Assembly: GCA_002269645.1 (NCBI GenBank) | Contig: NIVC01004668.1 | Location: forward strand, 1-38,559 | Direction of reading: 5' to 3' | DNA: 38,559 bases | Source of the DNA: Macrostomum lignano | Lineage: Eukaryota | Part shown: piece by piece, positions 1,467 to 10,817 of the stretch | Numbering within the stretch: position 1 is the stretch's first letter | How the letters are laid out: each line of letters opens with the position of its first letter | Translations under genes and position numbers: made by a program | The notes under the pieces: generated by a model | What the model was told of the DNA's origin: nothing | The model's input: the letters and a program-made list of their open reading frames with translations, nothing else | Databases searched by the model: none

Positions 1467-3337
1467 ATGTCTGATGCGTGTACATCATCGAATTTGGAAG
1501 CTGGAATTGGTGAGCTGCAAATAACCGATGAGGAGCATGCGGAGTTTGTGCAGCATCTTTACACCAAGCAACCAAAGCGCCTGGAACAGTCCGGCAAAGC
1601 AGCCGAGCGACTGAGGCAGCCGGCGCGGCCCCGGTCGGGAGTTTCCGTTTCGGGCGCGCTGCAACCCAGCCAGCTGGTGCAGCAGCAGCAGCAGCAGCAG
1701 CAGCATGTTTCAAGCCCGGTAACACCACAAGGGCGAGGCATGCATTCGCCCTACCAACAGTGGGAAGGAGCTGTTCAGCAGCAGCAGCAGCTAATTCAGC
1801 GTACGCAACCGCAGGCGCAAGGCTTCGACGACACGGGCGAAGGTTTTGAAAGCCTGCTGGAGCTGTTGAACGGACCTACGGATCCGGGACCACCGAGCGG
1901 AGGCGCCTGCATGCCAGGTAGCAGGGCGGACATCATCATCAACGCTCCAATGATGGTCCCCGCGCAGCCGCCACCACCACCGCCGCCACCGCCGCCGCCG
2001 GCACCGCCGGCTGCCGAGTCCCGCTCTGGTCCGAGCAAGGCGCCAGTGTCTGAGCAAACGCGCCTGGCACTAATTAAAAAGCTCAATCCCCAATCTATTC
2101 TTGTTGATGAGAATTTCAATAGGTAAGTCTTGCGTTTTTAGCACACTGGTTTTGTTTTGTCAGTAGATTTAGTCGGTTACAGAAGTCCTAAGGAATATTA
2201 ACCTAGCTTGTATCATCTCATACCAACAAGCTTCTCGTTGCTCAGAAGCAGCTCGAAATATGATAGCAGCTATTTACTCGAATGATACTGATGTTTACCC
2301 GGCCCAATGTATGTACATGCATTTCTACTGCACGCGGCCTGCAGCAGACTGAAGATGTTGCTGAAAATAGCGTCCTCGCGTTTAGTCTCCCAGCTTATGT
2401 AGATTATTGATGTGGCAAAGTAAGCAAAATTTATTACTGACCCATGAAATCAGATAACATGGTTTCCAGCACACGATAGCAATCTCATAAACCTGTGTAA
2501 ACACCTGCTCGCACTGCAGTCAGCTTCACACGGCCGTACTGCAAAGTCAACCACGTGAGGCAGTCGACTTTCTGCTTTGCAACCTCAAAAGGCAGAAGAA
2601 GCTGCTACCAATAATCAACATGGTTAATATCTGTGGGCACGTGAGTTGAGAGGCGCTTTGTTTAAAATTGTTGGGCTATTCATTTTTAAAAATTACAAAA
2701 TTCACAAAGAGTTTTTTATGGGAAATTAAGTATTTTTCTTTCATTCGTTGCCTCCTAACGATAAAGGAACTTGTTGCTAGTCTGTATAGTAAAGATCAAT
2801 GCACTTGACAGCGCTACTGGTATAAGTACTTTTCTTTACAACGTGTTCTTAGAGATTGAACTTGGTCGCACTAACGTTGCTGTGGAAACTAGCAACTGCT
2901 GCCTTCAAACTTTCAATCGCTTTTTCTCCTCTGTTCTGCAGACGCCGCTTTCGCTGTGCCTGAAGATGCGCCGCGCTGACCTGCTGTCGCTTCTCATCGA
3001 CTTTGATGCGGGACCGACTCAGCTGTGCTGCTGCGTTAGCGAGCGCACGAATCACTTTCACTACGCGTTTGCGAAGTGCCTGGACACCACCGCTGCCATT
3101 CAGATGGTGCAATGCTTGATCAGCTGCGTGGCTGAGAAGCACCAGTCCGACCTCATTGGTCTTCATGCCAAGGACCGCTTTAGGAAGACGCCACTGGATT
3201 ACCTGAACCACCGCATCTCTCAGCTGAGCGCCACCCAGCAGGAGCCGGACTCAGCTGAGCTGCTCGCTTCGATGCAGTGGCTGAAGAACAGCATCTGCCG
3301 AATGTTGCCTCGAGTTGAAGCTGGACTCGACTATTAG
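1467..3337 (+). CDS. IkappaB/NF-kappaB-p105-C-terminal-like ankyrin-repeat protein, copy A (~390 aa, 3 exons)
   Basis: Exons 1467-2122 (AG|gtaagt, phase 2), 2520-2640 (ctgcag|T ... CAC|gtgagt, phase 0) and 2942-3337 (ttctgcag|ACG ... TAG). The spliced frame is open: ...LVDENFNSQLHTAVLQSQPREAVDFLLCNLKRQKKLLPIINMVNICGHTPLSLCLKMRRADLLSLLIDFDAGPT...KDRFRKTPLDYL. This resembles NFKB1 DENGDSVLHLAII...IINMRNDLYQTPLHL (recalled). Confidence 0.8.
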
Positions 3338-3873
3338 CTTCTGATTGGTGCCCGATGTGCTCATGATTAGAACTCAACGCTGCCCTAGGGCTGAGCTTCT
3401 TCACAGAGAACTTTTGTCGTAAACATTGCACCGACACTTTTTCTGCCTTCTATCATCACTGTTAATACTGTTCGAAATTCATTAGATATTTATGCAACTT
3501 GTTCATCCGTTTTTATCAACTACTCGAGTATCTTTTCTCTTAAAAGGCGTTTCTATTTCTGATAATTATTACAACATCATATAAGGAAATATTTGTACAT
3601 ATTTTACAATAGGCAGCACACGGATGCCACAGTAAGCCTTTTTTATCACTACAATGGAGACTAATAATATTTTTAACGACAGCGTTGACATATTTCCCAA
3701 AAATGCTCTAAAAATACTAATTAGTGTGATAATTTTAATAACATCCTCGTACTTAGCGCTGTTATCCGCCTTAAATATATTTAAAAGTTTAATATTCCGC
3801 TCGTAAATAATGATAATTACGGCTGGTAACTTTTCAACACTATATTGCGCAAATGGGGAAGGCTGGCACACAT

Positions 3874-4125
3874 GTCTCTCTGTCTGTCTGTCTGTCTGTC
3901 TGTCTGTCTGTCTGTCTGTCTGTCTGTCTGTCTGTCTGTCTGTCTCTCTGTCTGTCTGTCTGTCTGTCTGTCTGTCTGTCTGTCTGTCTGTCTGTCTGTC
4001 TGTCTGTGTCTGTCTGTCTGTCTGTCTGTCTGTCTGTCTGTCTGTCTGTCTGTCTGTCTGTCTGTCTGTCTGTCTGTCTGTCTGTCTGTCTGTCTGTCTG
4101 TCTGTCTGTCTGTCTGTCTGTCTGT
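3874..4125 (+). repeat. (TCTG)n microsatellite, ~250 bp
   Basis: Near-perfect tetranucleotide run with two small interruptions. Confidence 0.98.
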
Positions 4126-4502
4126 GGATGCTCTATCGAATGAAATATTAAAAGCTCAACGCGGATATTTTGATAATAATTAAATTTTCTTACAGTATCA
4201 GGAATGTTGAAACTTCTATTGTGTAGCGCATGGTGTACAATTTCCACTTCTTTTGCACACCTGGAAATGTACACCCATGTGTTTCTGCCCCAGAACAACA
4301 AAATGCTGTATATAAATGTATCAAAAATTAAGGCTCGTAAATACAAGGCCGACCAGTTTAGTGCTTCATGCAATACAAAGCAATGTCATTCCCAGAAACT
4401 CGGGTATAAAATGTCCAAAATAGAGTTGAATCATCTGGCGTCGGAGCATCGAGACTGGGAATCGAAAAGCAGAAAAGCTTTGATTAGCCTTTTTACTTCC
4501 AG

Positions 4503-9040: not shown

Positions 9041-9475
9041 GAACATTCGCCCCCACAGAACATACGGCCCATAGAACATACGGCCCATAGAACATACGGC
9101 CCATAGAACATACGGCCCATAGAACATACGCCCCATAGAACATACGCCCCATAGAACATACGCCCTATAGAACATACGGCCCATAGAACAGACGCCCCAT
9201 AGAACATACGCCCCATAGAACATGCGGCCCATAGAACATACGGCCCATAGAACACACGGCCCATAGAACACACGGCCCATAAAACATACGCCCCATAGAA
9301 CATACGCCCCATAGAACATACGGCCCATAGAACATACGGCCCACAGAACATACGGCCCATAGAACACACGCCCCATAGAACATACGCCCCATAGAACATA
9401 CGGCCCATAGAACATACGGCCCATAGAACATGCGGCCCACAGAACATACGCTCCACAGAACATACGTCCCACAGA
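9041..9475 (+). repeat. 16-bp minisatellite (CATACGGCCCATAGAA)n, ~26 copies
   Basis: Period 16 (unit starts at 9061, 9077, 9093). It produces the repetitive minus-strand ORFs at 8891-9513. Confidence 0.95.
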
Positions 9476-9531
9476 TAAGTGCCACAAAACGTAATCAGAG
9501 ACAGGTATAGCATAGAAAACTTACACTGACC

Positions 9532-10817
9532 ATGTCAGATAAGGCAGTCGACGATCCAACGTCAATACTAGAAACTGGACATGCTATAGACGAAAGGCCA
9601 ACTTCAAATGAAGACAACCCCATCGAAGAGGAAGAAATCCTGTCAAAAGGTAAGCAGGATCCAAAGCAGCGAGCAAGAAAGCAGAGGAACTCAACTGGGT
9701 GTTCGCAGCCTATGCAGGCTGGCTGGATAGCTTCAGCTTCGGGCTTGCAGCAGCACGCGCAGCCGAACTACGAGTACACCTCGAACCCGAGTAACCCAGT
9801 GAGCTGCCGCTACGGTGGCATGACGCCGAAAATCTTGCAACGGAGTGGAGAGGATCGGCAGCAACAGGTGCGGTTGCAGCACTTCAGGGTGTTAACTAGG
9901 GGAGCTTGCAGTCTGTCGAGCGTTTATTTCAACGGCGATGCCGGGATAGATGCGTCGTTAGCAGGTACATGTAGTTCGACAGGCGTTCTCATGATTTCTG
10001 CATCAGAAGGCAACCAAGCTCCGAGTCTAATTTTATGCTGCATTGTTGTTCCTGTTTAAAACTTCGTTGGATTGTCAAAATTGAGTTGCTTCAATAGGTT
10101 TATATCGTTTCTTTTAATTCTTTTATTTTCATTTCAGACCGCTTCACATCGCTTTGTTGCAAAAGCAGTCAAGACACTCAATAGAAAGTCTGCTTTGTGA
10201 ATTGATTTGGCGTGAAAACCTGATGCCCACAGTGAATCTGGTCAATGTGCTTGGGCAAGTGAGTTTCCCTTCCTGTTCTTATTAAAACTGCCGAGCATTC
10301 AAGAAGCTTATTTCAACCCGCTTTTACGGTAAATAAGCGAAAGAAGAAAAGGAATTAGTTTGTCTTCAGGGAATTAAAGGCAATGAAAAATTAAATTTTG
10401 CAGACGCCTTTGTTTTTGTGCCTGCAAATGCGTCGGGCCGACTTAATCTCGTTGCTAATCGACTTTGATGCAGCGCCTACTCAACTCTGTCTCTGCTCGA
10501 GCGAGCGGTTAAACCACTTGCATTATGCCTTGTCGGACTGTCTGGAATCAGCGGCTTCTATCCATATGGTTCAAGGGCTCATTGACAGCGTGAAGAGGCG
10601 GAATGACTCCGATCTCATAGGCCTAGTTGCCAGGGACCGGTGGAGAAAGACGCCGCTGGACTACCTGAGCCACCGCATCGCTCAGCTGAGGGCGAGCCAG
10701 CAGAATCTGGCATCCCTGGAGCTTACAGCTGGGGGAATTGCTGAGACATCGAGGCAAATGGGAGGAATTGCTGGGATGTCAAGGCTTATAGGGAAAAGCT
10801 CAGACTTCAAGGCTTAG
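9532..10817 (+). pseudogene. IkappaB-like ankyrin gene copy C, probably disrupted
   Basis: The exon-1 start MSDKAVDDPTSILETG..KGKQDPKQRAR aligns with copy B MSDNTVESPISKLESG..KGKDVPQKRSR. Exon 2 at 10138-10258 is intact and 121 nt (PLHIALLQKQ...VNLVNVLGQ|gtgagt). Exon 3 starts at 10404 (TPLFLCLQMRRADLISLLIDFDAAP...RDRWRKTPLDYL). There is an in-frame TAA at 10057-10059 before the FNR|gt donor at 10097, and the 3' end is replaced by a repeat. Confidence 0.65.

Follow-up and report, generated by a model that had tools for sequence, protein, structure and literature searches.

Layout of the gene array

Contig NIVC01004668.1 of the flatworm Macrostomum lignano (38,559 nt; assembly GCA_002269645.1, Mlig_3_7) carries a tandem array of three paralogous genes, g1, g2, and g3. 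The whole contig was analyzed and is called the window here, and coordinates refer to it. The three genes lie on the + strand about 4 kb apart, with ATG-to-ATG distances of 4223 nt and 3842 nt. They have one exon-intron layout in common, which consists of a long exon 1, a phase-2 intron, an exon 2 of 121 nt in all three genes, a phase-0 intron, and an exon 3 of roughly 400 nt. The phase-2 intron falls one codon ahead of xLH in repeat 1 of the encoded ankyrin domain, and the phase-0 intron falls ahead of TPL in repeat 2. A preliminary description of this DNA had proposed three same-strand paralogs of identical architecture and had raised a flatworm as a possible host. The host is indeed M. lignano, and splicing, intron phases, and tblastn all bear out the array. 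A tblastn search of the window with the g1 and g2 proteins recovered exons 2 and 3 in three copies and nothing else comparable, with E values of 1e-37 to 1e-50 for exon 3.

The exons of g1 join into an uninterrupted open reading frame (ORF) of 390 aa, and those of g2 into an ORF of 356 aa (Table 1). Every donor in these two genes is GT and every acceptor is AG. The spliced g1 product is identical to PAA46870.1 (BOX15_Mlig002611g3), and the g2 product is 99% identical to P0001, the representative of the PAA46871.1 / BOX15_Mlig031663g1 cluster. The junctions 2122^2520^2640^2942 and 6240^6410^6530^6616 of the preliminary description are exact. The GenBank annotation places genes at 1467-3337 (390 aa) and 5690-7014 (356 aa) and leaves g3 without annotation. 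Since the Mlig_3_7 annotation was built with StringTie/TACO from a genome-guided RNA-seq transcriptome (PMC5730564), there is indirect transcript support for these four junctions. The proteins were already deposited as 'hypothetical proteins'. New here are the architecture of their domains, a confidently predicted fold, a third gene that lacks annotation, and a putative relic exon.

Table 1. Exons of the array and associated features in the window. A slash marks an exon-intron boundary.
Feature	Position	Strand	Remarks
g1 exon 1, 656 nt	1467..2122	+	MSD start, disordered Q/P-rich region, pre-ankyrin helix, DENFN-S; phase-2 end, donor tag/GTAAGT
g1 exon 2, 121 nt	2520..2640	+	ankyrin repeat 1 up to ...NICGH; phase-0 end
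g1 exon 3, 396 nt including stop	2942..3337	+	ankyrin repeat 2, two atypical repeats, C-terminal helix
possible exon-1 relic or alternative 5' exon	4523..4795	+	90-codon open frame without ATG, end ...QVRQLADENFNS/gtaagt; homologous to g1 exon-1 end
g2 exon 1, 551 nt	5690..6240	+	phase-2 end, donor ttc/GTGAGT; within annotated gene 5690-7014
g2 exon 2, 121 nt	6410..6530	+	
g2 exon 3, 399 nt including stop	6616..7014	+	
g3 exon 1, 425 nt	9532..9956	+	phase-2 end at weak donor gtc/GTTAGC; N-terminal hydrophobic motif degenerate; unannotated
g3 exon 2, 121 nt	10138..10258	+	
g3 exon 3, 414 nt including stop	10404..10817	+	g1/g2 homology to about 10729, then minisatellite-encoded tail
30-nt minisatellite, 7 copies	10730..10934	.	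in place of g3 C-terminal helix; gives last ~29 codons and stop

The conserved domain, its distribution, and its age

Each array protein consists of a disordered N-terminal half of 140-220 aa and a conserved C-terminal domain of ~200 aa. The full-length identity among the paralogs is low (42-46%) because the N-terminal halves have strongly diverged. What kind of domain has been conserved? A profile built from it found 225 ankyrin-type matches in the PDB, with ankyrin proteins at E values of 5e-14 to 1e-6. DARPins (5e-14) and ankyrin-1/2 (1e-9) were at the top of this search. About two repeats are detectable by sequence methods. Further evidence comes from AlphaFold2 modeling of the 201-aa g2 domain. 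The final model was made with a 16-sequence alignment padded with the matched segments of generic ankyrin proteins. It has a predicted local distance difference test (pLDDT) score of 93.2 and a predicted template modeling (pTM) score of 0.84, and consists of a helix at the N-terminus and then four pairs of helices, of which the final two are atypical. It replaced a model from a 3-sequence alignment that reached a pLDDT of 57 and gave meaningless Foldseek matches. The best 50 PDB matches of the final model in Foldseek were all ankyrin domains with a probability of ~1.0, and the named top matches in BFVD were likewise ankyrin domains. The structural neighbors include KANK, gankyrin, TRPV, ILK, VARP, ANKRA2, ASB8, and DHHC17, all within a ten-fold range of E values.

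The conserved domain is thus of the ankyrin type, and a stacked helix-turn-helix solenoid is predicted for it. The domain opens with a capping helix, which leads into a long repeat 1 and a canonical repeat 2. Two atypical repeats follow and finish in a long helix, and the chains terminate 10-15 residues past this last helix. A Pfam scan of the array proteins found no Death domain, SOCS box, F-box, kinase, or other accessory domain. The N-terminal halves have only three features in common: an MSD start, the motif LE[SA]GIGELQI, and a basic patch KGK..P.QKR.R. The second of these fits the class-1a nuclear-export pattern L-x3-I-x2-L-x-I and is degenerate in g3. Within the domain, the Cys and His residues of repeats 2-3 (LSLCLK, QLC, and NHxHYA; C76, C99, H108, and H110 in alignment A2) are invariant in all four family members, the distant paralog described below among them. 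These residues, which are encoded in window segments 2520-3337, 6410-7014, and 10138-10729, lie outside the ankyrin consensus, and a structural metal site formed by them is conceivable.

Among the proteins scanned, the family is restricted to M. lignano. When the conserved-domain profile was run with HMMER against 1.84 billion representative proteins, the only two strong matches were M. lignano array proteins, and one further match (P0010) was a distant paralog from the same species. Each of the remaining 61 weak matches, which include annelid, conifer, and environmental sequences, has Pfam Ank domains. The spliced g2 product, used as a protein query, likewise found only two clusters, both from M. 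lignano. The scan therefore agrees with the proposal in the preliminary description that the family is lineage-specific, since its only specific matches among the 1.84 billion representatives came from this species. The best outside match, an annelid protein (P0015), has no named relatives, so it was uninformative for identifying the family.

How old is the array? Evidence on this point comes from comparing copies of the genes. A 110-kb contig (L001) bears the same array at 96-98% nucleotide identity, which is consistent with the known redundancy of the DV1 assembly (PMC5730564). Both g1 and g2 are intact on L001. The window and L001 copies of g1 differ by 3 synonymous and 1 non-synonymous changes, with a ratio of non-synonymous to synonymous substitution rates (dN/dS) of 0.10, and those of g2 by 10 synonymous and 5 non-synonymous changes (dN/dS 0.155). 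In other words, g1 and g2 are under purifying selection. Among the paralogs, the codons of the ankyrin domain have a saturated dS of ~1.3, a dN of 0.25-0.32, and a dN/dS of 0.19-0.25. The saturated dS together with the low dN/dS indicates that the array is old and the domain constrained. The family had been described as rapidly diverging. This holds for the disordered N-terminal half but not for the ankyrin domain.

Third gene, partial copy, and surroundings

The three exons of g3 join into an open 319-aa frame, but only with the non-consensus donor tc/GTTAGC. This site (9956/9957) is homologous to the donor of g2 and splits the same Ser codon (tc/a). The idea that g3 is a pseudogene lacking a phase-2 donor was dropped because the homologous site preserves the frame. 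The 30-nt array that supplies the g3 tail is also present in the homeologous contig. Upstream, a 16-nt minisatellite (CCATAGAACATACGGC, 27 copies) spans 9036-9475, ends 57 nt 5' of the g3 start codon, and is conserved in position on the homeologous contig. This array could influence g3 transcription or account for the filtering of g3 from the annotation.

The copy of g3 on L001 is dead, with a 1-nt deletion in exon 1 and, in exon 3, an in-frame TAA together with indels. In addition, a Ty3/gypsy-type pol fragment on the minus strand (L001 18312-19616; RVT_1 and RT_RNaseH domains with a YQDD motif) replaces the end of its exon 1, at a place that corresponds to window 9917-10019. This decay is an example of gene loss after duplication. 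A third homeologous contig (86.6 kb) has a g1 copy (P0069 / PAA62268.1, 346 aa) whose C-terminus is frameshifted after ...LISCVA, which reflects either decay of that copy or an assembly error. Taken as a whole, the locus shows how copies have decayed since the recent duplication of the M. lignano genome, namely by transposon insertion, frameshifts, and capture of a coding end by a minisatellite.

The three copies of the preliminary description are all present, but g3 depends on its non-consensus donor, and a fourth, partial copy between g1 and g2 had been missed. The open frame of this partial copy ends in an exon-1-type junction, ADENFNS/gtaagt. A 25-nt pattern of this junction, for which chance predicts 0 matches, occurs only there and at g1. 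An older automatic ML2 gene model (A0A1I8G713, 429 aa) joins 4514-4771, with a donor at 4771, to g2 exon 1. The partial copy may be a relic, or it may be an alternative 5' exon, possibly one joined by trans-splicing. A tetranucleotide array, (TGTC)64 at 3873-4125, lies between g1 and the partial copy, and another, (AGTC)62, is found at 16345-16596.

The introns of g1 (397 and 301 nt) are longer than those of g2 (169 and 85 nt) because both contain fragments of a repeated element. The fragments lie at 2253-2369 and 2870-2937, and the same element occurs in inverted orientation at 12902-13023, with 79-88% identity.

Other features of the window suggest no functional link to the array. The first 1000 nt hold overlapping frame-broken open frames (for example PLGAIPKDNGKVRPIHDCS) that have no Pfam match, and look like a degraded mobile-element remnant. 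A multi-exon protein-kinase-like gene begins at about 19.3 kb on the + strand (~19336-30152), and its joined exon translations match Pkinase with an E value of 7.7e-12. Judging from its visible motifs, it may be a SCY1-like pseudokinase gene that extends to about 30 kb. Large satellites lie in the 25-29 kb region: (TTAG)133 at 24944-25474, a 20-mer repeated 31 times at 26928-27554, and a 17-mer/310-mer array at 28133-29131 with a GC skew of up to +0.5. They would lie inside the kinase-like gene if that gene reaches so far.

Possible functions and comparison with known systems

How do the array proteins act? We put at roughly 60% the probability that the array represents an orphan, Macrostomum-restricted family whose products are soluble intracellular ankyrin-repeat adaptor proteins. 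Since no catalytic features are found in the domain, its most likely mode of action would be to bind a partner stoichiometrically. The architecture suggests that the partner protein would be held on the groove of the four-repeat ankyrin domain, while the N-terminal motifs of the disordered half would set localization or turnover and stability. The family would then act as a non-enzymatic regulator that sequesters or escorts its partner. Partner binding, shuttling, and any link to Rel/NF-kappaB are what we infer rather than observe.

Several results weigh against the adaptor reading. Single sequences score below the Pfam ankyrin cut-off (E 0.002-0.006 and 17.5-19.1 bits for Ank_2, compared to a curated cut-off of 27.3). 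No ankyrin similarity was found in the C-terminal ~95 aa, either by hhalign against repeat 2 or in the PDB profile search. Repeats 3-4 are called from the AlphaFold model, which used generic ankyrin segments to pad its alignment. As pattern matches, the export and import signals read into the N-terminal motifs carry little information. Furthermore, the gene identifiers Mlig002611, Mlig031663, Mlig014114, and Mlig028006 were not found in the main texts searched or in the supplements of four M. lignano papers.

Do the array proteins belong to the NF-kappaB pathway? The preliminary description took them for genes resembling IkappaB or the NF-kappaB C-terminus, and called for a profile comparison of the ankyrin regions. 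In such a model, truncated IkappaB-like proteins derived from an IkappaB or from the p100/p105 C-terminus would bind flatworm Rel-homology domain (RHD) dimers and either keep them inactive or export them. Among natural few-repeat proteins of the PDB, p100 matches the family profile best (4OT9; E 8.9e-7, 32 bits), in a single stretch (8-98) that begins in the pre-ankyrin helix, and repeat 1 aligns with p100 as DEN..LH.A...N..N...TPL.L. Foldseek also places p100 at rank 1 in the PDB (E 2e-3, template modeling score 0.53) and IkappaB-beta at rank 22. The margins are negligible, however. DARPins and ankyrin-1/2 outscore p100 in the PDB profile search, KIDINS220 and PLA2G6 are about level with it, and IkappaB-alpha, IkappaB-beta, and Bcl-3 are outside the top 60 matches. 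The Foldseek E values of all PDB matches fall within 2e-3 to 2e-2, and in a search of viral structures the E value falls to 1e-3 for pandoravirus ankyrin proteins. The top viral matches are giant-virus and poxvirus ankyrin proteins, and an ichnovirus protein is at rank 35. The proposed parallel of the pre-ankyrin helix and repeat 1 to p105 did not hold up as an independent p100/p105 signature. A profile of the helix and repeat 1 by themselves (A3) gave no PDB match and no p100 at E<=10, and in a single-sequence search with a g1 fragment the p100 alignment (E 1.1, 8.7 bits) starts at DEN, past the helix. At the level of profiles and models, the resemblance to p100 is real but inseparable from generic ankyrin similarity.

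Hallmarks of IkappaB proteins are also absent. The modeled ankyrin domain has about 4 repeats compared to 6-7 in IkappaB and the p100/p105 C-terminus. A pattern scan found no DSGxxS degron (the corresponding positions read ESGIGE in g2, EAGIGE in g1, and ETGHAI in g3, with nothing in the distant paralog), and the array proteins have neither a PEST region nor a death domain. Outside matches from the exhaustive scan point both ways. The ankyrin domain of the annelid P0015, which is among the best single-stretch outside matches, can be aligned end to end with Bcl-3 and IkappaB-alpha, and the tail of another (P0060) is most similar to the p100 death domain, at an E value of only 1. On the other hand, no RHD is among the Pfam families listed for the 61 weak matches. 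The literature is similarly divided. M. lignano and other flatworms have no Toll-like receptors (PMC8609888). The planarian Schmidtea has seven highly divergent RHD genes and no clear NF-kappaB (PMC13563047), so a partner class may exist. Four-repeat truncated IkappaB mimics of polydnaviruses are reported to bind NF-kappaB (PMC3359993). Our literature search found nothing on RHD genes in Macrostomum and nothing usable on IkappaB intron positions. Because p100 tops two partly independent rankings, the estimate for a specific IkappaB/NF-kappaB origin or function lies above the prior for a random ankyrin family, yet such an origin or function is still unlikely. Equally doubtful is a more specific form of this reading, in which the array proteins would correspond to IkappaB in flatworms, as minimal inhibitors of four repeats that arose from the p100/p105 C-terminus, bind divergent Rel-homology proteins, and shuttle them out of the nucleus via the export-like motif. 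If this were true, a functional Rel/IkappaB module would survive in a phylum without Toll-like receptors and clear NF-kappaB. Whether flatworms retain a working Rel/NF-kappaB-IkappaB module is an unsettled question, and a bona fide IkappaB in M. lignano, which is open to transgenesis and RNA interference, would make it testable. As it stands, an old, constrained, species-restricted tandem ankyrin family is the more ordinary result.

The array proteins might instead be ankyrin adaptors of another pathway, with no link to Rel, for example substrate receptors of ubiquitin ligases, cytoskeletal or vesicle adaptors, or proteins related to reproduction. The diversity of the structural neighbors and the species restriction of the family fit this possibility, and many M. 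lignano-specific genes are reported to be related to reproduction (PMC7336406, PMC5816591). However, the lack of a SOCS box, F-box, kinase, or other accessory domain in Pfam searches speaks against it, as does the absence of the gene identifiers from the supplementary tables searched for those papers. This explanation is possible but not probable. Finally, the array could be mostly decaying duplicated DNA whose open frames are relics without present function. The dead L001 copy of g3, the frameshifted g1 copy on the third contig, the weak donor and minisatellite tail of g3, and the exon-1 relic would all be expected in such a case. This reading is very improbable, because g1 and g2 are intact on both of two homeologous contigs (dN/dS 0.10-0.16), have kept their ankyrin domain under constraint ever since an old duplication, and belong to the transcript-derived annotation.

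Comparison with known ankyrin proteins places the adaptor reading in context. Like the p100/p105 C-terminus, the array proteins have a helix directly before repeat 1, a long repeat 1 with the DEN..LH.A...N..N...TPL.L pattern, and then a canonical repeat. p100 differs in that it has 7 repeats and also contains a death domain, a phosphodegron at the C-terminus, and a Rel-homology domain at the N-terminus, whereas the array proteins have about 4 repeats, lack all three of these elements, and have a disordered N-terminal half. The array proteins resemble IkappaB-alpha, IkappaB-beta, Cactus, and Bcl-3 in being stand-alone proteins in which a regulatory N-terminal region precedes the ankyrin domain. 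Their possible export-like N-terminal motif recalls IkappaB-alpha and would suit a shuttle of that kind. Canonical IkappaBs, however, have 6-7 repeats, a DSGxxS degron, and a PEST tail, and the array proteins are without all three. The vankyrins of polydnaviruses are also short, with about four repeats and without the IkappaB regulatory elements (PMC3359993). Unlike the array proteins, vankyrins are recognizably derived from Cactus and have no long disordered N-terminal half. DARPins (1N0R) and ankyrin-1/2 give the highest profile scores (E 5e-14 to 1e-8) due to repeat 2 of the family (GQTPLSLCLKMRRSDLIPLLIDFDA). This one repeat is near the consensus, whereas repeats 1, 3, and 4 are atypical and have the invariant Cys and His. 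The only specific relative outside the array is BOX15_Mlig028006g2 (PAA84987.1, P0010, 264 aa). It is a shorter protein from another contig (622 kb), with 28-31% identity to the array proteins and an insertion within repeat 1. Nevertheless, it has the same MSD start, a disordered N-terminus with the KGK patch, and the same domain, in which GRTPLSLCLK and NHLHYA are common to it and the array proteins.

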